Of a DNA stretch of 64,000 nucleotides, positions 25,563 through 52,400 are shown piece by piece. This DNA is from Auanema rhodensis (lineage: Eukaryota; Animalia; Nematoda). Made by a program: the position numbers and the translations under genes. The notes beneath the pieces are model-generated. The model ran no database searches, was not told the origin of the DNA, and was given only the letters and a program-made list of their open reading frames with translations. The stretch is from contig OZ059900.1 of the NCBI GenBank assembly GCA_964057225.1, forward strand, positions 19,964,001-20,028,000. The letters are read 5' to 3'. The stretch's first letter is position 1; each line of letters starts with the position of its first letter.

Positions 25563-26930
25563 TTGAGCTAGGTTTCATTGACATTGCATGAGTTTGAACA
25601 CATGAAATCGTAAGTCAAAACCTTGTTTACAGCGAAATTTCCAAAAACTGGTTTTCCAGCATAATAAAATATTTCTCATGGGAAATACTGTGTTTTTGTA
25701 TTTTTCTAGTGTTCAGCATGTAAAATGCTTCATTTTAGTATGTAACACGCTGAAATTCGTTGCATTTGACGACTCATATGAACAAAAATCGATTTAATCA
25801 ATATTAGCCATAAGGGGCGTGCCCTCAGAATATGCTAATTTCCTTAATTTTCTAACCCCTGTTTTTTTGTCGTGAAAGTGGAACTAGACGTTGTACGAAC
25901 AATTTTGAGCTAGGTTTCATTGACATTGCATGAGTTTGAACACATGAAATCGTAAGTCAAAACCTTGTTTACAGCGAAATTTCCAAAAACTGGTTTTCCA
26001 GCATAATAAAATATTTCTCATGGGAAATACTGTGTTTTTGTATTTTTCTAGTGTTCAGCATGTAAAATGCTTCATTTTAGTATGTAACACGCTGAAATTC
26101 GTTGCATTTGACGACTCATATGAACAAAAATCGATTTAATCAATATTAGCCATAAGGGGCGTGCCCTCAGAATATGCTAATTTCCTTAATTTTCTAACCC
26201 CTGTTTTTTTGTCGTGAAAGTGGAACTAGACGTTGTACGAACAATTTTGAGCTAGGTTTCATTGACATTGCATGAGTTTGAACACATGAAATCGTAAGTC
26301 AAAACCTTGTTTACAGCGAAATTTCCAAAAACTGGTTTTCCAGCATAATAAAATATTTCTCATGGGAAATACTGTGTTTTTGTATTTTTCTAGTGTTCAG
26401 CATGTAAAATGCTTCATTTTAGTATGTAACACGCTGAAATTCGTTGCATTTGACGACTCATATGAACAAAAATCGATTTAATCAATATTAGCCATAAGGG
26501 GCGTGCCCTCAGAATATGCTAATTTCCTTAATTTTCTAACCCCTGTTTTTTTGTCGTGAAAGTGGAACTAGACGTTGTACGAACAATTTTGAGCTAGGTT
26601 TCATTGACATTGCATGAGTTTGAACACATGAAATCGTAAGTCAAAACCTTGTTTACAGCGAAATTTCCAAAAACTGGTTTTCCAGCATAATAAAATATTT
26701 CTCATGGGAAATACTGTGTTTTTGTATTTTTCTAGTGTTCAGCATGTAAAATGCTTCATTTTAGTATGTAACACGCTGAAATTCGTTGCATTTGACGACT
26801 CATATGAACAAAAATCGATTTAATCAATATTAGCCATAAGGGGCGTGCCCTCAGAATATGCTAATTTCCTTAATTTTCTAACCCCTGTTTTTTTGTCGTG
26901 AAAGTGGAACTAGACGTTGTACGAACAATT

Positions 26931-29900
26931 TTGAGCTAGGTTTCATTGACATTGCATGAGTTTGAACACATGAAATCGTAAGTCAAAACCTTGTTCACAG
27001 CGAAATTTCCAAAAACTGGTTTTCCAGCATAATAAAATATTTCTCATGGGAAATACTGTGTTTTTGTATTTTTCTAGTGTTCAGCATGTTAAATTCTTCA
27101 TTTTAGTATGTAACACGCTGAAATTCGTTGCATTTGACGACTCATATGAACAAAAATCGATTTAATCAATATTAGCCATAAGGGGCGTGCCCTCAGAATA
27201 TGCTAATTTCCTTAATTTTCTAACCCCTGTTTTTTTGTCGTGAAAGTGGAACTAGACGTTGTACGAACAATTTTGAGCTAGGTTTCATTGACATTGCATG
27301 AGTTTGAACACATGAAATCGTAAGTCAAAACCTTGTTTACAGCGAAATTTCCAAAAACTGGTTTTCCAGCATAATAAAATATTTCTCATGGGAAATACTG
27401 TGTTTTTGTATTTTTCTAGTGTTCAGCATGTAAAATGCTTCATTTTAGTATGTAACACGCTGAAATTCGTTGCATTTGACGACTCATATGAACAAAAATC
27501 GATTTAATCAATATTAGCCATAAGGGGCGTGCCCTCAGAATATGCTAATTTCCCTAATTTTCTAACCCCTGTTTTTTTGTCGTGAAAGTGGAACTAGACG
27601 TTGTACGAACAATTTTGAGCTAGGTTTCATTGACATTGCATGAGTTTGAACACATGAAATCGTAAGTCAAAACCTTGTTTACAGCGAAATTTCCAAAAAC
27701 TGGTTTTCCAGCATAATAAAATATTTCTCATGGGAAATACTGTGTTTTTGTATTTTTCTAGTGTTCAGCATGTAAAATGCTTCATTTTAGTATGTAATAC
27801 GCTGAAATTCGTTGCATTTGACGACTCATATGAACAAAAATCGATTTAATCAATATTAGCCATAAGGGGCGTGCCCTCAGAATATGCTAATTTCCTTAAT
27901 TTTCTAACCCCTGTTTTTTTGTCGTGAAAGTGGAACTAGACGTTGTACGAACAATTTTGAACTAGGTTTCATTGACATTGCATGAGTTTGAACACATGAA
28001 ATCGTAAGTCAAAACCTTGTTTACAGCGAAATTTCCAAAAACTGGTTTTCCAGCATAATAAAATATTTCTCATGGGAAATACTGTGTTTTTGTATTTTTC
28101 TAGTGTTCAGCATGTAAAATTCTTCATTTTAGTTTGTAACACGCTGAAATTCGTTGCATTTGACGACTCATATGAACAAAAATCGATTTAATCAATATTA
28201 GCCATAAGGGGCGTGCCCTCAGAATATGCTAATTTCCTTAATTTTCTAACCCCTGTTTTTTTGTCGTGAAAGTGGAACTAGACGTTGTACGAACAATTTT
28301 GAGCTAGGTTTCATTGACATTGCATGAGTTTGAACACATGAAATCGTAAGTCAAAACCTTGTTTACAGCGAAATTTCCAAAAACTGGTTTTCCAGCATAA
28401 TAAAATATTTCTCATGGGAAATACTGTGTTTTTGTATTTTTCTAGTGTTCAGCATGTAAAATGCTTCATTTTAGTATGTAACACGCTGAAATTCGTTGCA
28501 TTTGACGACTCATATGAACAAAAATCGATTTAATCAATATTAGCCATAAGGGGCGTGCCCTCAGAATATGCTAATTTCCCTAATTTTCTAACCACTGTTT
28601 TTTTGTCGTGAAAGTGGAACTAGACGTTGTACGAACAACTTTGAGCTAGGTTTCATTGACATTGCATGAGTTTGAACACATGAAATCGTAAGTCAAAACC
28701 TTGTTTACAGCGAAATTTCCAAAAACTGGTTTTCCAGCATAATAAAATATTTCTCATGGGAAATACTGTGTTTTTGTATTTTTTTAGTGTTCAGCATGTA
28801 AAATGCTTCATTTTAGTATGTAACACGCTGAAATTCGTTGCATTTGACGACTCATATGAACAAAAATCGATTTAATCAATATTAGCCATAAGGGGCGTGC
28901 CCTCAGAATATGCTAATTTCCCTAATTTTCTAACCCCTGTTTTTTTGTCGTGAAAGTGGAACTAGACGTTGTACGAACAATTTTGAGCTAGGTTTCATTG
29001 ACATTGCATGAGTTTGAACACATGAAATCGTAAGTCAAAACCTTGTTTACAGCGAAATTTCCAAAAACTGGTTTTCCAGCATAATAAAATATTTCTCATG
29101 GGAAATACTGTGTTTTTGTATTTTTCTAGTGTTCAGCATGTAAAATGCTTCATTTTAGTATGTAACACGCTGAAATTCGTTGCATTTGACGACTCATATG
29201 AACAAAAATCGATTTAATCAATATTAGCCATAAGGGGCGTGCCCTCAGAATATGCTAATTTCCTTAATTTTCTAACCCCTGTTTTTTTGTCGTGAAAGTG
29301 GAACTAGACGTTGTACGAACAATTTTGAGCTAGGTTTCATTGACATTGCATGAGTTTGAACACATGAAATCGTAAGTCAAAACCTTGTTTACAGCGAAAT
29401 TTCCAAAAACTGGTTTTCCAGCATAATAAAATATTTCTCATGGGAAATACTGTGTTTTTGTATTTTTCTAGTGTTCAGCATGTAAAATGCTTCATTTTAG
29501 TATGTAACACGCTGAAATTCGTTGCATTTGACGACTCATATGAACAAAAATCGATTTAATCAATATTAGCCATAAGGGGCGTGCCCTCAGAATATGCTAA
29601 TTTCCTTAATTTTCTAACCCCTGTTTTTTTGTCGTGAAAGTGGAACTAGACGTTGTACGAACAATTTTGAGCTAGGTTTCATTGACATTGCATGAGTTTG
29701 AACACATGAAATCGTAAGTCAAAACCTTGTTTACAGCGAAATTTCCAAAAACTGGTTTTCCAGCATTATAAAATATTTCTCATGGGAAATACTGTGTTTT
29801 TGTATTTTTCCAGTGTTCAGCATGTAAAATGCTTCATTTTAGTATGTAACACGCTGAAATTCGTTGCATTTGACGACTCATATGAACAAAAATCGATTTA

Positions 29901-32900
29901 ATCAATATTAGCCATAAGGGGCGTGCCCTCAGAATATGCTAATTTCCTTAATTTTCTAACCCCTGTTTTTTTGTCGTGAAAGTGGAACTAGACGTTGTAC
30001 GAACAATTTTGAGCTAGGTTTCATTGACATTGCATGAGTTTGAACACATGAAATCGTAAGTCAAAACCTTGTTCACAGCGAAATTTCCAAAAACTGGTTT
30101 TCCAGCATAATAAAATATTTCTCATGGGAAATACTGTGTTTTTGTATTTTTCTAGTGTTCAGCATGTAAAATTCTTCATTTTAGTATGTAACACGCTGAA
30201 ATTCGTTGCATTTGACGACTCATATGAACAAAAATCGATTTAATCAATATTAGCCATAAGGGGCGTGCCCTCAGAATATGCTAATTTCCTTAATTTTCTA
30301 ACCCCTGTTTTTTTGTCGTGAAAGTGGAACTAGACGTTGTACGAACAATTTTGAGCTAGGTTTCATTGACATTGCATGAGTTTGAACACATGAAATCGTA
30401 AGTCAAAACCTTGTTTACAGCGAAATTTCCAAAAACTGGTTTTCCAGCATAATAAAATATTTCTCATGGGAAATACTGTGTTTTTGTATTTTTCTAGTGT
30501 TCAGCATGTAAAATGCTTCATTTTAGTATGTAACACGCTGAAATTCGTTGCATTTGACGACTCATATGAACAAAAATCGATTTAATCAATATTAGCCATA
30601 AGGGGCGTGCCCTCAGAATATGCTAATTTCCCTAATTTTCTAACCCCTGTTTTTTTGTCGTGAAAGTGGAACTAGACGTTGTACGAACAATTTTGAGCTA
30701 GGTTTCATTGACATTGCATGAGTTTGAACACATGAAATCGTAAGTCAAAACCTTGTTTACAGCGAAATTTCCAAAAACTGGTTTTCCAGCATAATAAAAT
30801 ATTTCTCATGGGAAATACTGTGTTTTTGTATTTTTCTAGTGTTCAGCATGTAAAATGCTTCATTTTAGTATGTAATACGCTGAAATTCGTTGCATTTGAC
30901 GACTCATATGAACAAAAATCGATTTAATCAATATTAGCCATAAGGGGCGTGCCCTCAGAATATGCTAATTTCCTTAATTTTCTAACCCCTGTTTTTTTGT
31001 CGTGAAAGTGGAACTAGACGTTGTACGAACAATTTTGAGCTAGGTTTCATTGACATTGCATGAGTTTGAACACATGAAATCGTAAGTCAAAACCTTGTTT
31101 ACAGCGAAATTTCCAAAAACTGGTTTTCCAGCATAATAAAATATTTCTCATGGGAAATACTGTGTTTTTGTATTTTTCTAGTGTTCAGCATGTAAAATGC
31201 TTCATTTTAGTATGTAACACGCTGAAATTCGTTGCATTTGACGACTCATATGAACAAAAATCGATTTAATCAATATTAGCCATAAGGGGCGTGCCCTCAG
31301 AATATGCTAATTTCCTTAATTTTCTAACCCCTGTTTTTTTGTCGTGAAAGTGGAACTAGACGTTGTACGAACAATTTTGAGCTAGGTTTCATTGACATTG
31401 CATGAGTTTGAACACATGAAATCGTAAGTCAAAACCTTGTTTACAGCGAAATTTCCAAAAACTGGTTTTCCAGCATAATAAAATATTTCTCATGGGAAAT
31501 ACTGTGTTTTTGTATTTTTCTAGTGTTCAGCATGTAAAATGCTTCATTTTAGTATGTAACACGCTGAAATTCGTTGCATTTGACGACTCATATGAACAAA
31601 AATCGATTTAATCAATATTAGCCATAAGGGGCGTGCCCTCAGAATATGCTAATTTCCTTAATTTTCTAACCCCTGTTTTTTTGTCGTGAAAGTGGAACTA
31701 GACGTTGTACGAACAATTTTGAGCTAGGTTTCATTGACATTGCATGAGTTTGAACACATGAAATCGTAAGTCAAAACCTTGTTTACAGCGAAATTTCCAA
31801 AAACTGGTTTTCCAGCATAATAAAATATTTCTCATGGGAAATACTGTGTTTTTGTATTTTTCCAGTGTTCAGCATGTAAAATGCTTCATTTTAGTATGTA
31901 ACACGCTGAAATTCGTTGCATTTGACGACTCATATGAACAAAAATCGATTTAATCAATATTAGCCATAAGGGGCGTGCCCTCAGAATATGCTAATTTCCT
32001 TAATTTTCTAACCCCTGTTTTTTTGTCGTGAAAGTGGAACTAGACGTTGTACGAACAATTTTGAGCTAGGTTTCATTGACATTGCATGAGTTTGAACACA
32101 TGAAATCGTAAGTCAAAACCTTGTTCACAGCGAAATTTCCAAAAACTGGTTTTCCAGCATAATAAAATATTTCTCATGGGAAATACTGTGTTTTTGTATT
32201 TTTCTAGTGTTCAGCATGTTAAATTCTTCATTTTAGTATGTAACACGCTGAAATTCGTTGCATTTGACGACTCATATGAACAAAAATCGATTTAATCAAT
32301 ATTAGCCATAAGGGGCGTGCCCTCAGAATATGCTAATTTCCTTAATTTTCTAACCCCTGTTTTTTTGTCGTGAAAGTGGAACTAGACGTTGTACGAACAA
32401 TTTTGAGCTAGGTTTCATTGACATTGCATGAGTTTGAACACATGAAATCGTAAGTCAAAACCTTGTTTACAGCGAAATTTCCAAAAACTGGTTTTCCAGC
32501 ATAATAAAATATTTCTCATGGGAAATACTGTGTTTTTGTATTTTTCTAGTGTTCAGCATGTAAAATGCTTCATTTTAGTATGTAACACGCTGAAATTCGT
32601 TGCATTTGACGACTCATATGAACAAAAATCGATTTAATCAATATTAGCCATAAGGGGCGTGCCCTCAGAATATGCTAATTTCCCTAATTTTCTAACCCCT
32701 GTTTTTTTGTCGTGAAAGTGGAACTAGACGTTGTACGAACAATTTTGAGCTAGGTTTCATTGACATTGCATGAGTTTGAACACATGAAATCGTAAGTCAA
32801 AACCTTGTTTACAGCGAAATTTCCAAAAACTGGTTTTCCAGCATAATAAAATATTTCTCATGGGAAATACTGTGTTTTTGTATTTTTCTAGTGTTCAGCA

Positions 32901-33770
32901 TGTAAAATGCTTCATTTTAGTATGTAATACGCTGAAATTCGTTGCATTTGACGACTCATATGAACAAAAATCGATTTAATCAATATTAGCCATAAGGGGC
33001 GTGCCCTCAGAATATGCTAATTTCCTTAATTTTCTAACCCCTGTTTTTTTGTCGTGAAAGTGGAACTAGACGTTGTACGAACAATTTTGAACTAGGTTTC
33101 ATTGACATTGCATGAGTTTGAACACATGAAATCGTAAGTCAAAACCTTGTTTACAGCGAAATTTCCAAAAACTGGTTTTCCAGCATAATAAAATATTTCT
33201 CATGGGAAATACTGTGTTTTTGTATTTTTCTAGTGTTCAGCATGTAAAATGCTTCATTTTAGTTTGTAACACGCTGAAATTCGTTGCATTTGACGACTCA
33301 TATGAACAAAAATCGATTTAATCAATATTAGCCATAAGGGGCGTGCCCTCAGAATATGCTAATTTCCTTAATTTTCTAACCCCTGTTTTTTTGTCGTGAA
33401 AGTGGAACTAGACGTTGTACGAACAATTTTGAGCTAGGTTTCATTGACATTGCATGAGTTTGAACACATGAAATCGTAAGTCAAAACCTTGTTTACAGCG
33501 AAATTTCCAAAAACTGGTTTTCCAGCATAATAAAATATTTCTCATGGGAAATACTGTGTTTTTGTATTTTTCTAGTGTTCAGCATGTAAAATGCTTCATT
33601 TTAGTATGTAACACGCTGAAATTCGTTGCATTTGACGACTCATATGAACAAAAATCGATTTAATCAATATTAGCCATAAGGGGCGTGCCCTCAGAATATG
33701 CTAATTTCCCTAATTTTCTACCCCCTGTTTTTTTGTCGTGAAAGTGGAACTAGACGTTGTACGAACAATT
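26931..33770 (+). repeat. Nested HOR: 15-monomer (5130 bp) periodicity composed of 9+6 monomer subunits
   Basis: GTTCAC at 26996/30074/32126 and GTAATAC at 27798/30876/32928. TTGAACTA (27961/33091), ATGTTAAA (27090/32220) and AGTTTGT (28134/33264) recur only at the 5130 offset. Confidence 0.85.
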
Positions 33771-36700
33771 TTGAGCTAGGTTTCATTGACATTGCATGAG
33801 TTTGAACACATGAAATCGTAAGTCAAAACCTTGTTTACAGCGAAATTTCCAAAAACTGGTTTTCCAGCATAATAAAATATTTCTCATGGGAAATACTGTG
33901 TTTTTGTATTTTTCTAGTGTTCAGCATGTAAAATGCTTCATTTTAGTATGTAACACGCTGAAATTCGTTGCATTTGACGACTCATATGAACAAAAATCGA
34001 TTTAATCAATATTAGCCATAAGGGGCGTGCCCTTAGAATATGATAATTTCCTTAATTTTCTAACCCCTGTTTTTTTGTCGTGAAAGTGGAACTAGACGTT
34101 GTACGAACAATTTTGAGCTAGGTTTCATTGACATTGCATGAGTTTGAACACATGAAATCGTAAGTCAAAACCTTGTTTACAGCGAAATTTCCAAAAACTG
34201 GTTTTCCAGCATAATAAAATATTTCTCATGGGAAATACTGTGTTTTTGTATTTTTCTAGTGTTCAGCATGTAAAATGCTTCATTTTAGTATGTAACACGC
34301 TGAAATTCGTTGCATTTGACGACTCATATGAACAAAAATCGATTTAATCAATATTAGCCATAAGGGGCGTGCCCTTAGAATATGATAATTTCCTTAATTT
34401 TCTAACCCCTGTTTTTTTGTCGTGAAAGTGGAACTAGACGTTGTACGAACAATTTTGAGCTAGGTTTCATTGACATTGCATGAGTTTGAACACATGAAAT
34501 CGTAAGTCAAAACCTTGTTTACAGCGAAATTTCCAAAAACTGGTTTTCCAGCATAATAAAATATTTCTCATGGGAAATACTGTGTTTTTGTATTTTTCTA
34601 GTGTTCAGCATGTAAAATGCTTCATTTTAGTATGTAACACGCTGAAATTCGTTGCATTTGACGACTCATATGAACAAAAATCGATTTAATCAATATTAGC
34701 CATAAGGGGCGTGCCCTCAGAATATGATAATTTCCTTAATTTTCTAACCCCTGTTTTTTTGTCGTGAAAGTGGAACTAGACGTTGTACGAACAATTTTGA
34801 GCTAGGTTTCATTGACATTGCATGAGTTTGAACACATGAAATCGTAAGTCAAAACCTTGTTTACAGCGAAATTTCCAAAAACTGGTTTTCCAGCATAATA
34901 AAATATTTCTCGTGGGAAATACTGTGTTTTTGTATTTTTCTAGTGTTCAGCATGTAAAATGCTTCATTTTAGTATGTAACACGCTGAAATTCGTTGCATT
35001 TGACGACTCATATGAACAAAAATCGATTTAATCAATATTAGCCATAAGGGGCGTGCCCTCAGAATATGCTAATTTCCCTAATTTTCTACCCCCTGTTTTT
35101 TTGTCGTGAAAGTGGAACTAGACGTTGTACGAACAATTTTGAGCTAGGTTTCATTGACATTGCATGAGTTTGAACACATGAAATCGTAAGTCAAAACCTT
35201 GTTTACAGCGAAATTTCCAAAAACTGGTTTTCCAGCATAATAAAATATTTCTCATGGGAAATACTGTGTTTTTGTATTTTTCTAGTGTTCAGCATGTAAA
35301 ATGCTTCATTTTAGTATGTAACACGCTGAAATTCGTTGCATTTGACGACTCATATGAACAAAAATCGATTTAATCAATATTAGCCATAAGGGGCGTGCCC
35401 TCAGAATATGCTAATTTCCTTAATTTTCTAACCCCTGTTTTTTTGTCGTGAAAGTGGAACTAGACGTTGTACGAACAATTTTGAGCTAGGTTTCATTGAC
35501 ATTGCATGAGTTTGAACACATGAAATCGTAAGTCAAAACCTTGTTTACAGCGAAATTTCCAAAAACTGGTTTTCCAGCATAATAAAATATTTCTCATGGG
35601 AAATACTGTGTTTTTGTATTTTTCTAGTGTTCAGCATGTAAAATGCTTCATTTTAGTATGTAACACGCTGAAATTCGTTGCATTTGACGACTCATATGAA
35701 CAAAAATCGATTTAATCAATATTAGCCATAAGGGGCGTGCCCTCAGAATATGCTAATTTCCTTAATTTTCTAACCCCTGTTTTTTTGTCGTGAAAGTGGA
35801 ACTAGACGTTGTACGAACAATTTTGAGCTAGGTTTCATTGACATTGCATGAGTTTGAACACATGAAATCGTAAGTCAAAACCTTGTTTACAGCGAAATTT
35901 CCAAAAACTGGTTTTCCAGCATAATAAAATATTTCTCATGGGAAATACTGTGTTTTTGTATTTTTCTAGTGTTCAGCATGTAAAATGCTTCATTTTAGTA
36001 TGTAACACGCTGAAATTCGTTGCATTTGACGACTCATATGAACAAAAATCGGTTTAATCAATATTAGCCATAAGGGGCGTGCCCTCAGAATATGCTAATT
36101 TCCTTAATTTTCTAACCCCTGTTTTTCTGTCGTGAAAGTGGAACTAGACGTTGTACGAACAATTTTGAGCTAGGTTTCATTGACATTGCATGAGTTTGAA
36201 CACATGAAATCGTAAGTCAAAACCTTGTTTACAGCGAAATTTCCAAAAACTGGTTTTCCAGCATAATAAAATATTTCTCATGGGAAATACTGTGTTTTTG
36301 TTTTTTTCCAGTGTTCAGCATGTAAAATGCTTCATTTTAGTATGTAACACGCTGAAATTCGTTGCATTTGACGACTCATATGAACAAAAATCGATTTAAT
36401 CAATATTAGCCATAAGGGGCGTGCCCTCAGAATATGATAATTTCCTTAATTTTCTAACCCCTGTTTTTTTGTCGTGAAAGTGGAACTAGACGTTGTACGA
36501 ACAATTTTGAGCTAGGTTTCATTGACATTGCATGAGTTTGAACACATGAAATCGTAAGTCAAAACCTTGTTTACAGCGAAATTTCCAAAAACTGGTTTTC
36601 CAGCATAATAAAATATTTCTCATGGGAAATACTATGTTTTTGTATTTTTCTAGTGTTCAGCATGTAAAATGTTTCATTTTAGTATGTAACACGCTGAAAT

Positions 36701-39280
36701 TCGTTGCATTTGACGACTCATATGAACAAAAATCGATTTAATCAATATTAGCCATAAACGGCGTGCCCTCAGAATATGCTAATTTCCTTAATTTTCTAAC
36801 CCCTGTTTTTTTGTCGTGAAAGTGGAACTAGACGTTGTACGAACAATTTTGAGCTGGGTTTCATTGACATTGCATGAGTTTGAACACATGAAATCGTAAG
36901 TCAAAACCTTGTTTACAGCGAAATTTCCAAAAACTGGTTTTCCAGCATAATAAAATATTTCTCATGGGAAATACTGTGTTTTTGTATTTTTCTAGTGTTC
37001 AGCATGTAAAATGCTTCATTTTAGTATGTAACACGCTGAAATTCGTTGCATTTGACGACTCATATGAACAAAAATCGATTTAATCAATATTAGCCATAAG
37101 GGGCGTGCCCTCAGAATATGCTAATTTCCCTAATTTTCTAACCCCTGTTTTTTTGTCGTGAAAGTGGAACTAGACGTTGTACGAACAATTTTGAGCTAGG
37201 TTTCATTGACATTGCATGAGTTTGAACACATGAAATCGTAAGTCAAAACCTTGTTTACAGCGAAATTTCCAAAAACTGGTTTTCCAGCATAATAAAATAC
37301 TTCTCATGGGAAATACTGTGTTTTTGTATTTTTCTAGTGTTCAGCATGTAAAATGCTTCATTTTAGTATGTAACACGCTGAAATTCGTTGCATTTGACGA
37401 CTCATATGAACAAAAATCGATTTAATCAATATTAGCCATAAGGGGCGTGCCCTCAGAATATGCTAATTTCCCTAATTTTCTAACCCCTGTTTTTTTGTCG
37501 TGAAAGTGGAACTAGACGTTGTACGAACAATTTTGAGCTAGGTTTCATTGACATTGCATGAGTTTGAACACATGAAATCGTAAGTCAAAACCTTGTTTAC
37601 AGCGAAATTTCCAAAAACTGGTTTTCCAGCATAATAAAATATTTCTCATGGGAAATACTGTGTTTTTGTATTTTTCTAGTGTTCAGCATGTAAAATGCTT
37701 CATTTTAGTATGTAACACGCTGAAATTCGTTGCATTTGACGACTCATATGAACAAAAATCGATTTAATCAATATTAGCCATAAGGGGCGTGCCCTCAGAA
37801 TATGCTAATTTCCCTAATTTTCTACCCCCTGTTTTTTTGTCGTGAAAGTGGAACTAGACGTTGTACGAACAATTTTGAGCTAGGTTTCATTGACATTGCA
37901 TGAGTTTGAACACATGAAATCGTAAGTCAAAACCTTGTTTACAGCGAAATTTCCAAAAACTGGTTTTCCAGCATAATAAAATATTTCTCATGGGAAATAC
38001 TGTGTTTTTGTATTTTTCTAGTGTTCAGCATGTAAAATGCTTCATTTTAGTATGTAACACGCTGAAATTCGTTGCATTTGACGACTCATATGAACAAAAA
38101 TCGATTTAATCAATATTAGCCATAAGGGGCGTGCCCTCAGAATATGCTAATTTCCTTAATTTTCTAACCCCTGTTTTTTTGTCGTGAAAGTGGAACTAGA
38201 CGTTGTACGAACAATTTTGAGCTAGGTTTCATTGACATTGCATGAGTTTGAACACATGAAATCGTAAGTCAAAACCTTGTTTACAGCGAAATTTCCAAAA
38301 ACTGGTTTTCCAGCATAATAAAATATTTCTCATGGGAAATACTGTGTTTTTGTATTTTTCTAGTGTTCAGCATGTAAAATGCTTCATTTTAGTATGTAAC
38401 ACGCTAAAATTCGTTGCCTTTGACGACTCATATGAACAAAAATCGATTTAATCAATATTAGCCATAAGGGGCGTGCCCTCAGAATATGCTAATTTCCTTA
38501 ATTTTCTAACCCCTGTTTTTTTGTCGTGAAAGTGGAACTAGACGTTGTACGAACAATTTTGAGCTAGGTTTCATTGACATTGCATGAGTTTGAACACATG
38601 AAATCGTAAGTCAAAACCTTGTTTACAGCGAAATTTCCAAAAACTGGTTTTCCAGCATAATAAAATATTTCTCATGGGAAATACTGTGTTTTGTATTTTT
38701 CTAGTGTTCAGCTTGTAAAATGTTTCATTTTAGTATGTAACACGCTGAAATTCGTTGCATTTGACGACTCATATGAACAAAAATCGATTTAATCAATATT
38801 AGCCATAAGGGGCGTGCCCTCAGAATATGCTAATTTCCCTAATTTTCTAACCCTTGTTTTTCTGTCGTGAAAGTGGAACTAGACGTTGTACGAACAATTT
38901 TGAGCTAGGTTTCATTGACATTGCATGAGTTTGAACACATGAAATCGTAAGTCAAAACCTTGTTTACAGCGAAATTTCCAAAAACTGGTTTTCCAGCTTA
39001 ATAAAATATTTCTCATGGGAAATACTGTGTTTTTGTATTTTTCTAGTGTTCAGCATGTAAAATGCTTCATTTTAGTATGTAACACGCTGAAATTCGTTGC
39101 ATTTGACGACTCATATGAACAAAAATCGATTTAATCAATATTAGCCATAAGGGGCGTGCCCTCAGAATATGCTAATTTCCTTAATTTTCTAACCCCTGTT
39201 TTTTTGTCGTGAAAGTGGAACTAGACGTTGTACGAACAATTTTGAGCTAGGTTTCATTGACATTGCATGAGTTTGAACAC

Positions 39281-39310
39281 ATGAAATCGTAAAACGAATT
39301 CCAGCGTGTT
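39281..39310. other. Orientation-switch (inversion) junction between 39292 and 39293
   Basis: ...ATGAAATCGTAA|AACGAATTCCAGCGTGTTAC...: the + monomer ends at position 51 and the - monomer starts at position 199. There is no insertion and no overlap. A private T>C substitution lies at 39301. Confidence 0.97.
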
Positions 39311-42030
39311 ACATACTAAAATGAAGCATTTTACATGCTGAACACTAGAAAAATACAAAAACACAGTATTTCCCATGAGAAATATTTAGTTATGCTGGAA
39401 AACCAGTTTTTGGAAATTTCGCTGTAAACAAGGTTTTGACTTACGATTTCATGTGTTCAAACTCATGCAATGTCAATGAAACCTAGCTCAAAATTGTTCG
39501 TACAACGTCTAGTTCCACTTTCACGACAAAAAAACAGGGGGTAGAAAATTAGGGAAATTAGCATATTCTGAGGGCACGCCCCTTATGGCTAATATTGATT
39601 AAATCGATTTTTGTTCATATGAGTCGTCAAATGCAACGAATTTCAGCGTGTTACATACTAAAATGAAGCATTTTACATGCTGAACACTAGAAAAATACAA
39701 AAACACAGTATTTCCCATGAGAAATATTTTATTATGCTGGAAAACCAGTTTTTGGAAATTTCGCTGTAAACAAGGTTTTGACTTACGATTTCATGTGTTC
39801 AAACTCATGCAATGTCAATGAAACCTAGCTCAAAATTGTTCGTACAACGTCTAGTTCCACTTTCATGACAAAAAAACATGGGTTAGAAAATTAAGGAAAT
39901 TAGCATATTCTGAGGGCACGCCCCTTATGGCTAATATTGATTAAAACGATTTTTGTTCATATGAGTCGTCAAATGCAACGAATTTCAGCGTGTTACATAC
40001 TAAAATGAAGCATTTTACATGCTGAACACTAGAAAAATACAAAAACACAGTATTTCCCATGAGAAATATTTTATTATGCTGGAAAACCAGTTTTTGGAAA
40101 TTTCGCTGTAAACAAGGTTTTGACTTACGATTTCATGTGTTCAAACTCATGCAATGTCAATGAAACCTAGCTCAAAATTGTTCGTACAACGTCTAGTTCC
40201 ACTTTCACGACAAAAAAACAGGGGTTAGAAAATTAAGGAAATTAGCATATTCTGAGGGCACGCCCCTTATGGCTAATATTGATTAAATCGATTTTTGTTC
40301 ATATGAGTCGTCAAATGCAACGAATTTCAGCGTGTTACATACTAAAATGAAGCATTTTACATGCTGAACACTAGAAAAATACAAAAACACAGTATTTCCC
40401 ATGAGAAATATTTTATTATGCTGGAAAACCAGTTTTTGGAAATTTCGCTGTAAACAAGGTTTTGACTTACGATTTCATGTGTTCAAACTCATGCAATGTC
40501 AATGAAACCTAGCTCAAAATTGTTCGTACAACGTCTAGTTCCACTTTCACGACAAAAAAACAGGGGTTAGAAAATTAAGCAAATTAGCATATTCTGAGGG
40601 CACGCCCCTTATGGCTAATATTGATTAAATCGATTTTTGTTCATATGAGTCGTCAAATGCAACGAATTTCAGCGTGTTACATACTAAAATGAAGCATTTT
40701 ACATGCTGAACACTAGAAAAATACAAAAACACAGTATTTCCCATGAGAAATATTTAGTTATGCTGGAAAACCAGTTTTTGGAAATTTCGCTGTAAACAAG
40801 GTTTTGACTTACGATTTCATGTGTTCAAACTCATGCAATGTCAATGAAACCTAGCTCAAAATTGTTCGTACAACGTCTAGTTCCACTTTCACGACAAAAA
40901 AACAGGGGGTAGAAAATTAGGGAAATTAGCATATTCTGAGGGCACGCCCCTTATGGCTAATATTGATTAAATCGATTTTTGTTCATATGAGTCGTCAAAT
41001 GCAACGAATTTCAGCGTGTTACATACTAAAATGAAACATTTTACATGCTGAACACTAGAAAAATACAAAAACACAGTATTTCCCATGAGAAATATTTTAT
41101 TATGCTGGAAAACCAGTTTTTGAAAATTTCGCTGTAAACAAGGTTTTGACTTACGATTTCATGTGTTCAAACTCATGCAATGTCAATGAAACCTAGCTCA
41201 AAATTGTTCGTACAACGTCTAGTTCCACTTTCATGACAAAAAAACATGGGTTAGAAAATTAAGGAAATTAGCATATTCTGAGGGCACGCCCCTTATGGCT
41301 AATATTGATTAAAACGATTTTTGTTCATATGAGTCGTCAAATGCAACGAATTTCAGCGTGTTACATACTAAAATGAAGCATTTTACATGCTGAACACTAG
41401 AAAAATACAAAAACACAGTATTTCCCATGAGAAATATTTTATTATGCTGGAAAACCAGTTTTTGGAAATTTCGCTGTAAACAAGGTTTTGACTTACGATT
41501 TCATGTGTTCAAACTCATGCAATGTCAATGAAACCTAGCTCAAAATTGTTCGTACAACGTCTAGTTCCACTTTCACGACAAAAAAACAGGGGTTAGAAAA
41601 TTAAGGAAATTAGCATATTCTGAGGGCACGCCCCTTATGGCTAATATTGATTAAATCGATTTTTGTTCATATGAGTCGTCAAATGCAACGAATTTCAGCG
41701 TGTTACATACTAAAATGAAGCATTTTACATGCTGAACACTAGAAAAATACAAAAACACAGTATTTCCCATGAGAAATATTTTATTATGCTGGAAAACCAG
41801 TTTTTGGAAATTTCGCTGTAAACAAGGTTTTGACTTACGATTTCATGTGTTCAAACTCATGCAATGTCAATGAAACCTAGCTTAAAATTGTTCGTACAAC
41901 GTCTAGTTCCACTTTCACGACAAAAAAACAGGGGTTAGAAAATTAAGCAAATTAGCATATTCTGAGGGCACGCCCCTTATGGCTAATATTGATTAAATCG
42001 ATTTTTGTTCATATGAGTCGTCAAATGCAA
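39293..42030 (-). repeat. 4-monomer HOR (1368 bp), two copies, directly abutting the junction
   Basis: TTTAGTTA at 39389/40757 and TAAGCAAA at 40580/41948. GGGGGTAG, TCATGAC, CATGGG and AAAACG variants are also paired at 1368 bp. Confidence 0.9.
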
Positions 42031-45000
42031 CGAATTTCAGCGTGTTACATACTAAAATGAAGCATTTTACATGCTGAACACTAGAAAAATACAAAAACAC
42101 AGTATTTCCCATGAGAAATATTTTATTATGCTGGAAAACCAGTTTTTGGAAATTTCGCTGTAAACAAGGTTTTGACTTACGATTTCATGTGTTCAAACTC
42201 ATGCAATGTCAATGAAACCTAGCTCAAAATTGTTCGTACAACGTCTAGTTCCACTTTCACGACAAAAAAACAGGGGTTAGAAAATTAGGGAAATTAGCAT
42301 ATTCTGAGGGCACGCCCCTTATGGCTAATATTGATTAAATCGATTTTTGTTCATATGAGTCGTCAAATGCAACGAATTTCAGCGTGTTACATACTAAAAT
42401 GAAGCATTTTACATGCTGAACACTAGAAAAATACAAAAACACAGTATTTCCCATGAGAAATATTTTATTATGCTGGAAAACCAGTTTTTGGAAATTTCGC
42501 TGTAAACAAGGTTTTGACTTACGATTTCATGTGTTCAAACTCATGCAATGTCAATGAAACCTAGCTCAAAATTGTTCGTACAACGTCTAGTTCCACTTTC
42601 ACGACAAAAAAACAGGGGTTAGAAAATTAAGGAAATTAGCATATTCTGAGGGCACGCCCCTTATGGCTAATATTGATTAAATCGATTTTTGTTCATATGA
42701 GTCGTCAAATGCAACGAATTTCAGCGTGTTACATACTAAAATGAAGCATTTTACATGCTGAACACTAGAAAAATACAAAAACACAGTATTTCCCATGAGA
42801 AATATTTTATTATGCTGGAAAACCAGTTTTTGGAAATTTCGCTGTAAACAAGGTTTTGACTTACGATTTCATGTGTTCAAACTCATGCAATGTCAATGAA
42901 ACCTAGCTCAAAATTGTTCGTACAACGTCTAGTTCCACTTTCACGACAAAAAAACAGGGGTTAGAAAATTAAGGAAATTAGCATATTCTGAGGGCACGCC
43001 CCGTATGGCTAATATTGATTAAATCGATTTTTGTTCATATGAGTCGTCAAATGCAACGAATTTCAGCGTGTTACATACTAAAATGAAGCATTTTACATGC
43101 TGAACACTAGAAAAATACAAAAACACAGTATTTCCCATGAGAAATATTTTATTATGCTGGAAAACCAGTTTTTGGAAATTTCGCTGTAAACAAGGTTTTG
43201 ACTTACGATTTCATGTGTTCAAACTCATGCAATGTCAATGAAACCTAGCTCAAAATTGTTCGTACAACGTCTAGTTCCACTTTCACGACAAAAAAACAGG
43301 GGTTAGAAAATTAAGGAAATTAGCATATTCTGAGGGCACGCCCCTTATGGCTAATATTGATTAAATCGATTTTTGTTCATATGAGTCGTCAAATGCAACG
43401 AATTTCAGCGTGTTACATACTAAAATGAAGCATTTTACATGCTGAACACTAGAAAAATACAAAAACACAGTATTTCCCATGAGAAATATTTTATTATGCT
43501 GGAAAACCAGTTTTTGGAAATTTCGCTGTAAACAAGGTTTTGACTTACGATTTCATGTGTTCAAACTCATGCAATGTCAATGAAACCTAGCTCAAAATTG
43601 TTCGTACAACGTCTAGTTCCACTTTCACGACAAAAAAACAGGGGTTAGAAAATTAAGGAAATTAGCATATTCTGAGGGCACGCCCCTTATGGCTAATATT
43701 GATTAAATCGATTTTTGTTCATATGAGTCGTCAAATGCAACGAATTTCAGCGTGTTACATACTAAAATGAAGCATTTTACATGCTGAACACTAGAAAAAT
43801 ACAAAAACACAGTATTTCCCATGAGAAATATTTTATTATGCTGGAAAACCAGTTTTTGGAAATTTCGCTGTAAACAAGGTTTTGACTTACGATTTCATGT
43901 GTTCAAACTCATGCAATGTCAATGAAACCTAGCTCAAAATTGTTCGTACAACGTCTAGTTCCACTTTCACGACAAAAAAACAGGGGTTAGAAAATTAAGG
44001 AAATTAGCATATTCTGAGGGCACGCCCCTTATGGCTAATATTGATTAAATCGATTTTTGTTCATATGAGTCGTCAAATGCAACGAATTTCAGCGTGTTAC
44101 ATACTAAAATGAAGCATTTTACATGCTGAACACTAGAAAAATACAAAAACACAGTATTTCCCATGAGAAATATTTTATTATGCTGGAAAACCAGTTTTTG
44201 GAAATTTCGCTGTAAACAAGGTTTTGACTTACGATTTCATGTGTTCAAACTCATGCAATGTCAATGAAACCTAGCTCAAAATTGTTCGTACAACGTCTAG
44301 TTCCACTTTCACGACAAAAAAACAGGGGTTAGAAAATTAAGGAAAATAGCATATTCTGAGGGCACGCCCCTTATGGCTAATATTGATTAAATCGATTTTT
44401 GTTCATATGAGTCGTCAAATGCAACGAATTTCAGCGTGTTACATACTAAAATGAAGCATTTTACATGCTGAACACTAGAAAAATACAAAAACACAGTATT
44501 TCCCATGAGAAATATTTTATTATGCTGGAAAACCAGTTTTTGGAAATTTCGCTGTAAACAAGGTTTTGACTTACGATTTCATGTGTTCAAACTCATGCAA
44601 TGTCAATGAAACCTAGCTCAAAATTGTTCGTACAACGTCTAGTTCCACTTTCACGACAAAAAAACAGGGGTTAGAAAATTAGGGAAATTAGCATATTCTG
44701 AGGGCACGCCCCTTATGGCTAATATTGATTAAATCGATTTTTGTTCATATGAGTCGTCAAATGCAACGAATTTCAGCGTGTTACATACTAAAATGAAGCA
44801 TTTTACATGCTGAACACTAGAAAAATACAAAAACACAGTATTTCCCATGAGAAATATTTTATTATGCTGGAAAACCAGTTTTTGGAAATTTCGCTGTAAA
44901 CAAGGTTTTGACTTACGATTTCATGTGTTCAAACTCATGCAATGTCAATGAAACCTAGCTCAAAATTGTTCGTACAACGTCTAGTTCCACTTTCACGACA

Positions 45001-46499
45001 AAAAAACAGGGGTTAGAAAATTACGGAAATTAGCATATTCTGAGGGCACGCCCCTTATGGCTAATATTGATTAAATCAATTTTTGTTCATATGAGTCGTC
45101 AAATGCAACGAATTTCAGCGTGTTACATACTAAAATGAAGCATTTTACATGCTGAACACTAGAAAAATACAAAAACACAGTATTTCCCATGAGAAATATT
45201 TTATTATGCTGGAAAACCAGTTTTTGGAAATTTCGCTGTAAACAAGGTTTTGACTTACGATTTCATGTGTTCAAACTCATGCAATGTCAATGAAACCTAG
45301 CTCAAAATTGTTCGTACAACGTCTAGTTCCACTTTCACGACAAAAAAACAGGGGTTAGAAAATTAAGGAAATTAGCATATTCTGAGGGCACGCCCCTTAT
45401 GGCTAATATTGATTAAATCGATTTTTGTTCATATGAGTCGTCAAATGCAACGAATTTCAGCGTGTTACATACTAAAATGAAGCATTTTACATGCTGAACA
45501 CTAGAAAAATACAAAAACACAGTATTTCCCATGAGAAATATTTTATTATGCTGGAAAACCAGTTTTTGGAAATTTCGCTGTAAACAAGGTTTTGACTTAC
45601 GATTTCATGTGTTCAAACTCATGCAATGTCAATGAAACCTAGCTCAAAATTGTTCGTACAACGTCTAGTTCCACTTTCACGACAAAAAAACAGGGGTTAG
45701 AAAATTAAGGAAAATAGCATATTCTGAGGGCACGCCCCTTATGGCTAATATTGATTAAATCGATTTTTGTTCATATGAGTCGTCAAATGCAACGAATTTC
45801 AGCGTGTTACATACTAAAATGAAGCATTTTACATGCTGAACACTAGAAAAATACAAAAACACAGTATTTCCCATGAGAAATATTTTATTATGCTGGAAAA
45901 CCAGTTTTTGGAAATTTCGCTGTAAACAAGGTTTTGACTTACGATTTCATGTGTTCAAACTCATGCAATGTCAATGAAACCTAGCTCAAAATTGTTCGTA
46001 CAACGTCTAGTTCCACTTTCACGACAAAAAAACAGGGGTTAGAAAATTAGGGAAATTAGCATATTCTGAGGGCACGCCCCTTATGGCTAATATTGATTAA
46101 ATCGATTTTTGTTCATATGAGTCGTCAAATGCAACGAATTTCAGCGTGTTACATACTAAAATGAAGCATTTTACATGCTGAACACTAGAAAAATACAAAA
46201 ACACAGTATTTCCCATGAGAAATATTTTATTATGCTGGAAAACCAGTTTTTGGAAATTTCGCTGTAAACAAGGTTTTGACTTACGATTTCATGTGTTCAA
46301 ACTCATGCAATGTCAATGAAACCTAGCTCAAAATTGTTCGTACAACGTCTAGTTCCACTTTCACGACAAAAAAACAGGGGTTAGAAAATTAAGGAAATTA
46401 GCATATTCTGAGGGTACGCCCCTTATGGCTAATATTGATTAAATCGATTTTTGTTCATATGAGTCGTCAAATGCAACGAATTTCAGCGTGTTACATACT

Positions 46500-49400
46500 A
46501 AAATGAAGCATTTTACATGCTGAACACTAGAAAAACACAAAAACACAGTATTTCCCATGAGAAATATTTTATTATGCTGGAAAACCAGTTTTTGGAAATT
46601 TCGCTGTAAACAAGGTTTTGACTTACGATTTCATGTGTTCAAACTCATGCAATGTCAATGAAACCTAGCTCAAAATTGTTCGTACAACGTCTAGTTCCAC
46701 TTTCACGACAAAAAAACAGGGGTTAGAAAATTAAGGAAAATAGCATATTCTGAGGGCACGCCCCTTATGGCTAATATTGATTAAATTGATTTTTGTTCAT
46801 ATGAGTCGTCAAATGCAACGAATTTCAGCGTGTTACATACTAAAATGAAGCATTTTACATGCTGAACACTAGAAAAATACAAAAACACAGTATTTCCCAT
46901 GAGAAATATTTTATTATGCTGGAAAACCAGTTTTTGGAAATTTCGCTGTAAACAAGGTTTTGACTTACGATTTCATGTGTTCAAACTCATGCAATGTCAA
47001 TGAAACCTAGCTCAAAATTGTTCGTACAACGTCTAGTTCCACTTTCACGACAAAAAAACAGGGGTTAGAAAATTAAGGAAATTAGCATATTCTGAGGGCA
47101 CGCCCCTTATGGCTAATATTGATTAAATCGATTTTTGTTCATATGAGTCGTAAAATGCAACGAATTTCAGCGTGTTACATACTAAAATGAAGCATTTTAC
47201 ATGCTGAACACTAGAAAAATACAAAAACACAGTATTTCCCATGAGAAATATTTTATTATGCTGGAAAACCAGTTTTTGGAAATTTCGCTGTAAACAAGGT
47301 TTTGACTTACGATTTCATGTGTTCAAACTCATGCAATGTCAATGAAACCTAGCTCAAAATTGTTCGTACAACGTCTAGTTCCACTTTCACGACAAAAAAA
47401 CAGGGGTTAGAAAATTAGGGAAATTAGCATATTCTGAGGGCACGCCCCTTATGGCTAATATTGATTAAATCCATTTTTGTTCATATGAGTCGTCAAATGC
47501 AACGAATTTCAGCGTGTTACATACTAAAATGAAGCATTTTACAAGCTGAACACTAGAAAAATACAAAACACAGTATTTCCCATGAGAAATATTTTATTAT
47601 GCTGGAAAACCAGTTTTTGGAAATTTCGCTGTAAACAAGGTTTTGACTTACGATTTCATGTGTTCAAACTCATGCAATGTCAATGAAACCTAGCTCAAAA
47701 TTGTTCGTACAACGTCTAGTTCCACTTTCACGACAAAAAAACAGGGGTTAGAAAATTAAGGAAATTAGCATATTCTGAGGGCACGCCCCTTATGGCTAAT
47801 ATTGATTAAATCGATTTTTGTTCATATGAGTCGTCAAAGGGGACGAATTTCAGCGTGTTACATACTAAAAAGAAGCATTTTACATGCTGAGCACTAGAAA
47901 AATACAAAAACACAGTATTTCCCATGAGAAATATTTTATTATGCTGGAAAACCAGTTTTTGGAAATTTCGCTGTAAACAAGGTTTTGACTTACGATTTCA
48001 TGTGTTCAAACTCATGCAATGTCAATGAAGCTTAGCTCAAAATTGTTCGTACAACGTCTAGTTCCACTTTCACGACAAAAAAACAGGGGTTAGAAAATTA
48101 AGGAAATTAGCATATTCTGAGGGCACGCCCCTTATGGCTAATATTGATTAAATCGATTTTTGTTCATATGAGTCGTCAAAGGGGACGAATTTCAGCGTGT
48201 TACATACTAAAAAGAAGCATTTTACATGCTGAGCACTAGAAAAATACAAAAACACAGTATTTCCCATGAGAAATATTTTATTATGCTGGAAAACCAGTTT
48301 TTGGAAATTTCGCTGTAAACAAGGTTTTGACTTACGATTTCATGTGTTCAAACTCATGCAATGTCAATGAAGCTTAGCTCAAAATTGTTCGTACAACGTC
48401 TAGTTCCACTTTCACGACAAAAAAACAGGGGTTAGAAAATTAAGGAAATTAGCATATTCTGAGGGCACGCCCCTTATGGCTAATATTGATTAAATCGATT
48501 TTTGTTCATATGAGTCGTCAAATGCAACGAATTTCAGCGTGTTACATACTAAAATGAAGCATTTTACATGCTGAACACTAGAAAAATACAAAAACACAGT
48601 ATTTCCCATGAGAAATATTTTATTATGCTGGAAAACCAGTTTTTGGAAATTTCGCTGTAAACAAGGTTTTGACTTACGATTTCATGTGTTCAAACTCATG
48701 CAATGTCAATGAAACCTAGCTCAAAATTGTTCGTACAACGTCTAGTTCCACTTTCACGACAAAAAAACAGGGGTTAGAAAATTAAGGAAATTAGCATATT
48801 CTGAGGGCACGCCCCTTATGGCTAATATTGATTAAATCGATTTTTGTTCATATGAGTCGTCAAATGCAACGAATTTCAGCGTGTTACATACTAAAATGAA
48901 GCATTTTACATGCTGAACACTAGAAAAACACAAAAACACAGTATTTCCCATGAGAAATATTTTATTATGCTGGAAAACCAGTTTTTGGAAATTTCGCTGT
49001 AAACAAGGTTTTGACTTACGATTTCATGTGTTCAAACTCATGCAATGTCAATGAAACCTAGCTCAAAATTGTTCGTACAACGTCTAGTTCCACTTTCACG
49101 ACAAAAAAACAGGGGTTAGAAAATTAAGGAAAATAGCATACTCTGAGGGCACGCCCCTTATGGCTAATATTGATTAAATCGATTTTTGTTCATATGAGTC
49201 GTCAAATGCAACGAATTTCAGCGTGTTACATACTAAAATGAAGCATTTTACATGCTGAACACTAGAAAAATACAAAAACACAGTATTTCCCATGAGAAAT
49301 ATTTTATTATGCTGGAAAACCAGTTTTTGGAAATTTCGCTGTAAACAAGGTTTTGACTTACGATTTCATGTGTTCAAACTCATGCAATGTCAATGAAACC

Positions 49401-52400
49401 TAGCTCAAAATTGTTCGTACAACGTCTAGTTCCACTTTCACGACAAAAAAACAGGGGTTAGAAAATTAAGGAAATTAGCATATTCTGAGGGCACGCCCCT
49501 TATGGCTAATATTGATTAAATCGATTTTTGTTCATATGAGTCGTCAAATGCAACGAATTTCAGCGTGTTACATACTAAAATGAAGCATTTTACATGCTAA
49601 ACACTAGAAAAACACAAAAACACAGTATTTCCCATGAGAAATATTTTATTATGCTGGAAAACCAGTTTTTGGAAATTTCGCTGTAAACAAGGTTTTGACT
49701 TACGATTTCATGTGTTCAAACTCATGCAATGTCAATGAAACCTAGCTCAAAATTGTTCGTACAACGTCTAGTTCCACTTTCACGACAAAAAAACAGGGGT
49801 TAGAAAATTAAGGAAAATAGCATATTCTGAGGGCACGCCCCTTATGGCTAATATTGATTAAATCGATTTTTGTTCATATGAGTCGTCAAATGCAACGAAT
49901 TTCAGCGTGTTACATACTAAAATGAAGCATTTTACATGCTGAACACTAGAAAAATACAAAAACACAGTATTTCCCATGAGAAATATTTTATTATGCTGGA
50001 AAACCAGTTTTTGGAAATTTCGCTGTAAACAAGGTTTTGACTTACGATTTCATGTGTTCAAACTCATGCAATGTCAATGAAACCTAGCTCAAAATTGTTC
50101 GTACAACGTCTAGTTCCACTTTCACGACAAAAAAACAGGGGTTAGAAAATTAAGGAAATTAGCATATTCTGAGGGCACGCCCCTTATGGCTAATATTGAT
50201 TAAATCGATTTTTGTTCATATGAGTCGTAAAATGCAACGAATTTCAGCGTGTTACATACTAAAATGAAGCATTTTACATGCTGAACACTAGAAAAATACA
50301 AAAACACAGTATTTCCCATGAGAAATATTTTATTATGCTGGAAAACCAGTTTTTGGAAATTTCGCTGTAAACAAGGTTTTGACTTACGATTTCATGTGTT
50401 CAAACTCATGCAATGTCAATGAAACCTAGCTCAAAATTGTTCGTACAACGTCTAGTTCCACTTTCACGACAAAAAAACAGGGGTTAGAAAATTAGGGAAA
50501 TTAGCATATTCTGAGGGCACGCCCCTTATGGCTAATATTGATTAAATCCATTTTTGTTCATATGAGTCGTCAAATGCAACGAATTTCAGCGTGTTACATA
50601 CTAAAATGAAGCATTTTACAAGCTGAACACTAGAAAAATACAAAACACAGTATTTCCCATGAGAAATATTTTATTATGCTGGAAAACCAGTTTTTGGAAA
50701 TTTCGCTGTAAACAAGGTTTTGACTTACGATTTCATGTGTTCAAACTCATGCAATGTCAATGAAACCTAGCTCAAAATTGTTCGTACAACGTCTAGTTCC
50801 ACTTTCACGACAAAAAAACAGGGGTTAGAAAATTAAGGAAATTAGCATATTCTGAGGGCACGCCCCTTATGGCTAATATTGATTAAATCGATTTTTGTTC
50901 ATATGAGTCGTAAAATGCAACGAATTTCAGCGTGTTACATACTAAAATGAAGCATTTTACATGCTGAACACTAGAAAAACACAAAAACACAGTATTTCCC
51001 ATGAGAAATATTTTATTATGCTGGAAAACCAGTTTTTGGAAATTTCGCTGTAAACAAGGTTTTGACTTACGATTTCATGTGTTCAAACTCATGCAATGTC
51101 AATGAAACCTAGCTCAAAATTGTTCGTACAACGTCTAGTTCCACTTTCACGACAAAAAAACAGGGGTTAGAAAATTAAGGAAAATAGCATATTCTGAGGG
51201 CACGCCCCTTATGGCTAATATTGATTAAATCGATTTTTGTTCATATGAGTCGTCAAATGCAACGAATTTCAGCGTGTTACATACTAAAATGAAGCATTTT
51301 ACATGCTGAACACTAGAAAAATACAAAAACACAGTATTTCCCATGAGAAATATTTTATTATGCTGGAAAACCAGTTTTTGGAAATTTCGCTGTAAACAAG
51401 GTTTTGACTTACGATTTCATGTGTTCAAACTCATGCAATGTCAATGAAACCTAGCTCAAAATTGTTCGTACAACGTCTAGTTCCACTTTCACGACAAAAA
51501 AACAGGGGTTAGAAAATTAAGGAAATTAGCATATTCTGAGGGCACGCCCCTTATGGCTAATATTGATTAAATCGATTTTTGTTCATATGAGTCGTAAAAT
51601 GCAACGAATTTCAGCGTGTTACATACTAAAATGAAGCATTTTACATGCTGAACACTAGAAAAATACAAAAACACAGTATTTCCCATGAGAAATATTTTAT
51701 TATGCTGGAAAACCAGTTTTTGGAAATTTCGCTGTAAACAAGGTTTTGACTTACGATTTCATGTGTTCAAACTCATGCAATGTCAATGAAACCTAGCTCA
51801 AAATTGTTCGTACAACGTCTAGTTCCACTTTCACGACAAAAAAACAGGGGTTAGAAAATTAGGGAAATTAGCATATTCTGAGGGCACGCCCCTTATGGCT
51901 AATATTGATTAAATCCATTTTTGTTCATATGAGTCGTCAAATGCAACGAATTTCAGCGTGTTACATACTAAAATGAAGCATTTTACATGCTGAACACTAG
52001 AAAAATACAAAAACACAGTATTTCCCATGAGAAATATTTTATTATGCTGGAAAACCAGTTTTTGGAAATTTCGCTGTAAACAAGGTTTTGACTTACGATT
52101 TCATGTGTTCAAACTCATGCAATGTCAATGAAACCTAGCTCAAAATTGTTCGTACAACGTCTAGTTCCACTTTCACGACAAAAAAACAGGGGTTAGAAAA
52201 TTAAGGAAATTAGCATATTCTGAGGGCACGCCCCTTATGGCTAATATTGATTAAATCGATTTTTGTTCATATGAGTCGTAAAATGCAACGAATTTCAGCG
52301 TGTTACATACTAAAATGAAGCATTTTACATGCTGAACACTAGAAAAATACAAAAACACAGTATTTCCCATGAGAAATATTTTATTATGCTGGAAAACCAG

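Follow-up and report, generated by a model that had tools for sequence, protein, structure and literature searches.

The 64-kb stretch of Auanema rhodensis DNA analyzed here (C8:19,964,001-20,028,000, hereafter the window) is filled from end to end by a single 342-bp satellite (34% GC), whose monomers switch strand between window positions 39292 and 39293. We think it likely that this site is a real, single-copy breakpoint of a rearrangement sealed by end joining, lying within a chromosome-specific satellite block of ~10.9 Mb. Strand switches are common in the 342-bp satellite, of which the 39292/39293 junction is one unamplified example, and large segmental duplications, some direct and others inverted, have carried older switch junctions to further sites.

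The change of strand is seen in several ways. Monomer positions given below refer to a 342-bp consensus, with position 1 set at TTGAGCTAGG; a BLAST search of the window with this consensus finds 116 monomers on the plus strand, the last of them ending at 39292, and 73 on the minus strand, which start at 39293, with a mean identity of 99.3% (range 98-100%). Tandem Repeats Finder (TRF) divides the array at the same place, where AT skew and GC skew also reverse their sign. The final plus piece comprises positions 1-51 (39242-39292) and the initial minus piece positions 199-1 (39293-39491); position 51 is thus joined straight to the reverse complement of position 199 (+51|rc199, with rc for reverse complement), with no microhomology on either side and no inserted bases relative to the consensus. 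An inverted-repeat search pairs 38900-39292 with 39441-39833 at 99% complementarity, leaving 148 nt between the arms, and a second, equally valid register of the same junction leaves 194 nt (39099-39292 unpaired). The 148-nt center is a mere phase difference between the two cuts. As in a satellite strand switch, opposite orientations of one monomer family flank the junction, which falls within monomers and has no foreign DNA between its arms. There are no ambiguous bases (Ns) in the window, and neither Ns nor an assembly gap at or near the junction. A preliminary description of the window had placed the flip, the onset of inverted symmetry at 39441 and a 148-bp spacer at exactly these coordinates, which TRF, BLAST and the inverted-repeat search bear out; its account of a join lacking both microhomology and insertion agrees with the zero values found for each, and its reading of a blunt end-joining product fits them. 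The genome-wide count of a junction k-mer, which the same description had suggested, gives a single copy: the 25-mer across the junction has no second occurrence, either in the window or in the 180.9-Mb assembly (180,911,798 bases in 112 records).

A single-nucleotide polymorphism (SNP) just inside the minus arm, 191A>G at 39301, had been described as private. No other monomer of the window has it, but a genome-wide count finds it in 41 monomers, 22 on the forward and 19 on the reverse strand, and the minus block that begins at the junction accounts for several. Because it is found in 41 monomers across the array, 191A>G is a standing variant, not a repair scar.

Strand switches across the satellite block

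The junction lies in an array that uses both strands almost equally. A 24-mer from the monomer matches 15,071 times in forward and 12,395 times in reverse orientation (55% and 45%), starting at C8:15.02 Mb; among the matches listed in all k-mer searches, every one is on C8. We surveyed orientation in 800-bp samples taken every 200 kb. The 55 samples that contained the satellite span ~15.3-26.1 Mb, a block of ~10.9 Mb in which orientation changes between 31 neighboring samples; two of the 55 themselves hold a switch, and only the final 1.4 Mb is uniformly plus. Together with the k-mer searches, the samples reveal at least 70 strand switches belonging to at least five junction families. This minimum is the sum 27+23+14+2+2+1+1, in which 23 is the number of opposite-sense switches required between clustered copies of the +73|rc194 family, and the last three terms stand for a 52-bp inversion scar (two junctions), a switch in sample L040 and the 39292/39293 junction. 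The general expectation of the preliminary description, that strand switches are uncommon in satellites, does not hold for this block. Samples at C8:15,100,001 (L009), 22,700,001 (L047) and 26.3-26.7 Mb (L065-L067) did not match the 342-bp monomer. Since L047 comes from within the block, the array is broken there by other AT-rich sequence.

The other junctions differ in copy number and anatomy. The +73|rc194 junction, a 1-nt overlap within an 8-9-nt patch of similarity, is present in 27 copies that form four clusters with recurrent spacings of 829, 1171, 4249 and 8458 bp; two of the clusters are mirror images of each other, and these small inverted blocks have been amplified as parts of larger units. 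The rc167|A|+91 junction, which has one extra A, is found in 14 copies (5 forward, 9 reverse) scattered over 8 Mb of C8, from 15.9 to 24.3 Mb, and rc72|11 nt|+216 in two copies, at 17.67 and 18.79 Mb. The L040 switch is centered on a natural 10-bp palindrome of the monomer, AAATCGATTT (positions 224-233); with changes to the left of the palindrome and 26 nt (positions 187-212) missing to the right, it looks like a fold-back that lost the symmetry of its center through later small deletions. Past the window, the right arm bears a scar that consists of a deletion, a 52-bp inverted piece (positions 283-334) and a second deletion, with overlaps of 5 nt and 1 nt, and looks like a template-switch event. 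Breakpoint offsets range accordingly: 121 for +73|rc194, 76 for rc167|A|+91, ~22 for L040, 144 plus an 11-nt insert for rc72|+216, and 148 for 39292/39293. Since the junction families recur with distinct flanks, they are not read chimeras; the satellite truly does switch strand.

Table 1. Coordinates of the strand-switch junction, its surroundings and related features; locations without a prefix are window positions
Feature	Location	Strand	Description
Left (+) arm	1..39292	+	forward 342-bp monomers, ending at position 51; TRF and BLAST
Junction	39292..39293	.	position 51 to reverse complement of 199, blunt; unique 25-mer
Asymmetric center, 148 nt	39293..39440	-	reverse complement of positions 52-199; inverted-repeat search
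Right (-) arm	39293..64000	-	73 reverse monomers; TRF and BLAST
SNP 191A>G	39301	-	sole instance in window (monomer 116); standing array variant
Quasi-palindrome made by the join	39281..39304	+	similar 12-nt motifs ATGAAATCGTAA and CTGAAATTCGTT ahead of the breakpoints
Second-to-last full left-arm monomer	38559..38899	+	rare variant pair 297T + 305C
Left-arm 300-bp monomers	15731-16030; 17741-18040		positions 217-258 missing
Left-arm 520-bp and 243/210 variant monomers	L002:308-827, 1854-2373, 3058-3456, 4483-5401, 7112-7510; L003:1-424
+73|rc194 clusters	C8:16,300,555-16,315,804; 21,904,877-21,920,470; 22,018,506-22,049,159; 23,874,496-23,886,864		one copy at L015:594
rc167|A|+91 example	L006:6006-6008 = C8:21,622,006-21,622,008
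L040 switch	C8:21,300,001-21,300,260		centered on 10-bp palindrome
Right-arm scar	L004:8659-9180 = C8:20,036,659-20,037,180		52-bp inverted piece between two deletions

A 2026 preprint on the germline genome of Auanema rhodense provides the setting for this block. It reports a 180.9-Mb HiFi/hifiasm assembly with seven chromosome scaffolds and multi-megabase blocks of tandem repeats with units of 167-504 nt, in which coverage is ~29x as compared with 236x in genic DNA; the X chromosome also keeps some repeat blocks. The 342-bp unit falls within the reported size range and is not among the units listed in the text of the preprint. The repeats were clustered there by strand-invariant k-mers, and a term search of that text returns no mention of array orientation. 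The 342-bp block is probably located on a germline chromosome and made of germline-restricted DNA. We also considered human DNA as the source and rejected it, since the sequence is unlike alpha satellite and belongs to a nematode assembly of 181 Mb.

Relation between the two arms

Both arms are long. Contiguous sequence is plus over 59 kb or more to the left, extending no less than 20 kb beyond the start of the window, and minus over 44.7 kb or more to the right, extending no less than 20 kb past its end, with the 52-bp micro-inversion as the one exception. Spot samples and strand-specific k-mers agree with plus monomers from ~19.50 Mb and minus monomers to at least 20.39 Mb, followed by a plus sample at 20.50 Mb; the arms may therefore be ~0.5 Mb (left) and ~0.39 Mb (right) long, provided that no paired switches lie between the samples. 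When 59 kb of the left arm was compared with 45 kb of the right, the longest exact stretch common to both was 1.23 kb, as against exact repeats of more than 2 kb inside a single arm. The mirror-image arms expected of a fold-back are thus not seen over 45-59 kb, either in exact matches or in arm-specific markers, and this lack of long mirrored identity rules out a recent fold-back.

The markers in question are confined to one strand. The right arm opens with a four-monomer unit, a diagnostic k-mer of which has four copies, all minus, at 20.004-20.005 and 20.178-20.179 Mb; this arm therefore does not duplicate any assembled plus sequence in inverted form. On the left, the two 300-bp monomers share a 42-bp deletion whose junction k-mer occurs at just those two sites in the genome, with no minus-strand copy in a genome-wide k-mer search. 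Other left-arm variants are 520-bp monomers, in which positions 1-308 are followed by 131-342, and the 243/210 variant, in which a 23-nt filler lies between positions 243 and 210. All 21 genomic copies of the latter are forward. Half of them sit at C8:24.63-24.77 Mb and thereby reveal a large direct paralogue of the left arm at a distance of 4.7 Mb. Window 1-342 is a monomer whose exact variant is found again at C8:17.32-17.54 Mb (inverted) and 24.56-24.75 Mb (direct), where one stretch of recurrence keeps the left-arm spacing of 1710, 1710 and 1026 bp; these two regions are segmental duplications on the order of 100-200 kb. A further paralogous segment lies at 18.50-18.55 Mb.

Some variants do connect the arms. 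The 297T + 305C pair, which marks a monomer close to the junction, has this one forward copy genome-wide and 12 reverse copies, 10 of which sit 75-137 kb into the right arm, a distribution that hints at common ancestry of the arms or at exchange between them. In the window, the local order of variant monomers is also the same in both arms relative to monomer direction, but inverting any segment of a single array would produce this, and we gave it no weight.

Origin of the junction

We propose that the junction arose from two broken ends of like polarity, both of them right-hand ends of pieces in plus orientation. One cut would have fallen after monomer position 51 and the other after position 199, and the ends would have been fused head to head by nonhomologous end joining, without microhomology and without filler; the product would be younger than the amplified junction families, or would never have been copied. 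Zero homology on either side and the lack of filler are the signature of classical nonhomologous end joining, and neither of the marks of polymerase theta (a templated insert, or terminal homology of 1 nt or more) was found at 39292/39293. Microhomology does occur elsewhere in the array, at the right-arm scar (5 nt and 1 nt) and at +73|rc194 (1 nt). Both the repair pathway and the existence of the junction in the animal, as opposed to the assembly, are things that we infer. Within this reading, we give roughly even odds to an old inverted duplication and to a two-break inversion that has since lost its partner junction or had it changed. The missing reciprocal junction and the distribution of 297T + 305C lean toward the duplication, while the two-break inversion, or else great age, is favored by markers that are not mirrored and by arms that lack mirror identity.

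Several observations weigh against a simple end-joined breakpoint. The reciprocal junction of a simple inversion, rc52|+200, was not found anywhere in the genome with as many as 3 mismatches allowed, and a gapped genome-wide search that allowed for the loss of up to 30 nt found just the unrelated family at 17.67 and 18.79 Mb; a partner changed by a greater loss or by later turnover would escape both searches. Germline end joining in C. elegans mostly uses polymerase theta and as a rule retains homology of 1 nt or more, of which 39292/39293 has none. The sequences ahead of the two breakpoints resemble each other, which random breakage followed by end joining does not explain. Finally, for a single-copy junction a chimeric read or a misjoin is conceivable.

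The resemblance of the breakpoints raises the question of whether a nuclease, a topoisomerase or a secondary structure could have picked the sites, either within TGAAAT(T)CGTWW motifs that are followed by G or within monomer positions 186-217 (on the plus arm, for example, window 39099-39130). The 12 nt ahead of each breakpoint are alike (ATGAAATCGTAA and CTGAAATTCGTT), the next base in the intact monomer being G in both cases, and their similarity is in the top 0.16% of all monomer position pairs, a figure obtained post hoc. Eight of 22 breakpoints of distinct rearrangement types fall within positions 186-217, where ~2 would be expected, and three independent types break at 216|217, the center of the 8-bp palindrome TCATATGA; these counts are likewise post hoc. 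The hairpin at the junction is not unusually stable as compared with shuffled sequence (z = -1.1). We treat the motif similarity and the clustering as leads, not as findings, as they are post hoc and draw on few events. Sequence-preferring breakage appears unlikely: the other junction families lack a shared motif, and direct similarity of two ends confers no pairing advantage for an inverted join. Still less credible is the proposal of the preliminary description that breaks flanking a positioned nucleosome set the offset, for which the numerical nearness of 148 to 147 is the sole point. Offsets of ~22, 76, 121 and 144 are seen elsewhere, the same junction can also be read with a 194-nt center, and two cuts in a tandem array need not share one monomer; moreover, rhabditid nematodes are holocentric, with CENP-A not tied to satellite arrays. 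The match of 148 to 147 looks like coincidence, and we regard nucleosome-guided breakage as highly improbable. A half-monomer sub-repeat (342 = 2 x 171) was also considered as the source of the 148 offset and rejected, as the halves have no meaningful similarity.

An old fold-back or fusion of sister chromatids, in which unequal loss created the 148-nt phase difference before the ends were joined and turnover has since remodeled the arms, is possible but on balance doubtful. It predicts a single head-to-head junction with a short center and no reciprocal, just as observed. In monomer direction, both arms approach the junction through similar domains (15G/145C, then 206T/131del/9A, then 293C), the 297T + 305C monomer beside the junction is otherwise found only inverted and mainly in the right arm, and the L040 fold-back on a natural palindrome implies that fold-backs do occur in this array. 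Yet the shared order is based on just about three domains, the arms are not mirror copies (at most 1.23 kb of shared exact match between them and more than 2 kb within an arm), and genome-wide the 42-bp-deletion and 243/210 markers of the left arm have no minus copies, nor the four-monomer unit of the right arm a plus copy. The fold-back inversions of breakage-fusion-bridge cycles resemble the present junction in being head to head, with a short asymmetric center and no reciprocal, and differ in that the arms here are not mirror copies over 45-59 kb. In center-break revision of long palindromes, unequal loss and end joining leave a long inverted repeat with an asymmetric center; the L040 switch looks like such a product, whereas 39292/39293 shows no symmetric ancestor. 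We consider it quite unlikely that the junction is an artefact, either a chimeric HiFi read or a hifiasm misjoin of two true segments, even though it is single-copy, the array is ~99% homogeneous and satellite blocks in the published A. rhodense assembly have only ~29x coverage against 236x in genic DNA. A palindromic read from a missed adapter would have a zero spacer and identical arms, and neither holds for the present arms, which differ and are offset by 148 nt; a join from plus to minus would require a read that itself spans a switch; and many other switches, recurring with distinct flanks, are certainly real, with no gap at the present site. The end-joined breakpoint remains our preferred account of 39292/39293.

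On a broader scale, the mosaic of switches could reflect repeated germline breakage in a block that the soma discards, favored at short palindromes and at one motif inside positions 186-217. Fold-back or end-joining repair and subsequent large duplications in both orientations would then cause multi-megabase eliminated blocks to grow in a holocentric worm able to tolerate chromosome breaks and to heal them with telomeres, with 39292/39293 as a fresh, unamplified event. We put this forward as speculation that is more apt to be wrong than right by some distance.

Comparison with other satellite arrays

In the complete human genome, non-centromeric satellites such as HSat3 on chromosome 9 and beta satellite contain more than 200 inversion breakpoints, counted per Mb (Altemose et al., bioRxiv 10.1101/2021.07.12.452052). 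The block described here is similar in being a multi-megabase homogeneous array with many strand switches (at least 70 in ~10.9 Mb) and differs in its host, a holocentric nematode with programmed DNA elimination, in its 342-bp monomer and in being probably germline-restricted. According to a survey of 325 eukaryotes (bioRxiv 10.64898/2026.09.17.752431), satellite arrays tend to keep to one strand. Like those arrays, the 342-bp satellite is tandem and highly homogeneous, with local higher-order patterns of variants, but it is 55% forward and 45% reverse.

Taken alone, the 39292/39293 junction matters little, as one breakpoint among many and of an already documented type. The wider picture, of which the term search of the preprint text returned no mention, may be useful: an 11-Mb block with nearly equal use of the two strands, junction families copied up to 27 times in both orientations and breakpoints clustered in one part of the monomer. 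It supplies concrete markers for tracing the expansion of such blocks, and the very long inverted repeats of this region can confuse assembly, read mapping and Hi-C scaffolding. A match to the Rfam family MIR8562, a microRNA precursor with a long hairpin, spans the junction at 39204-39529 with 71.7 bits against a threshold of 211 and is a side effect of the inverted repeat, not a gene; a far sub-threshold match to the Rfam bicoid 3'UTR is caused by the same inverted repeat.

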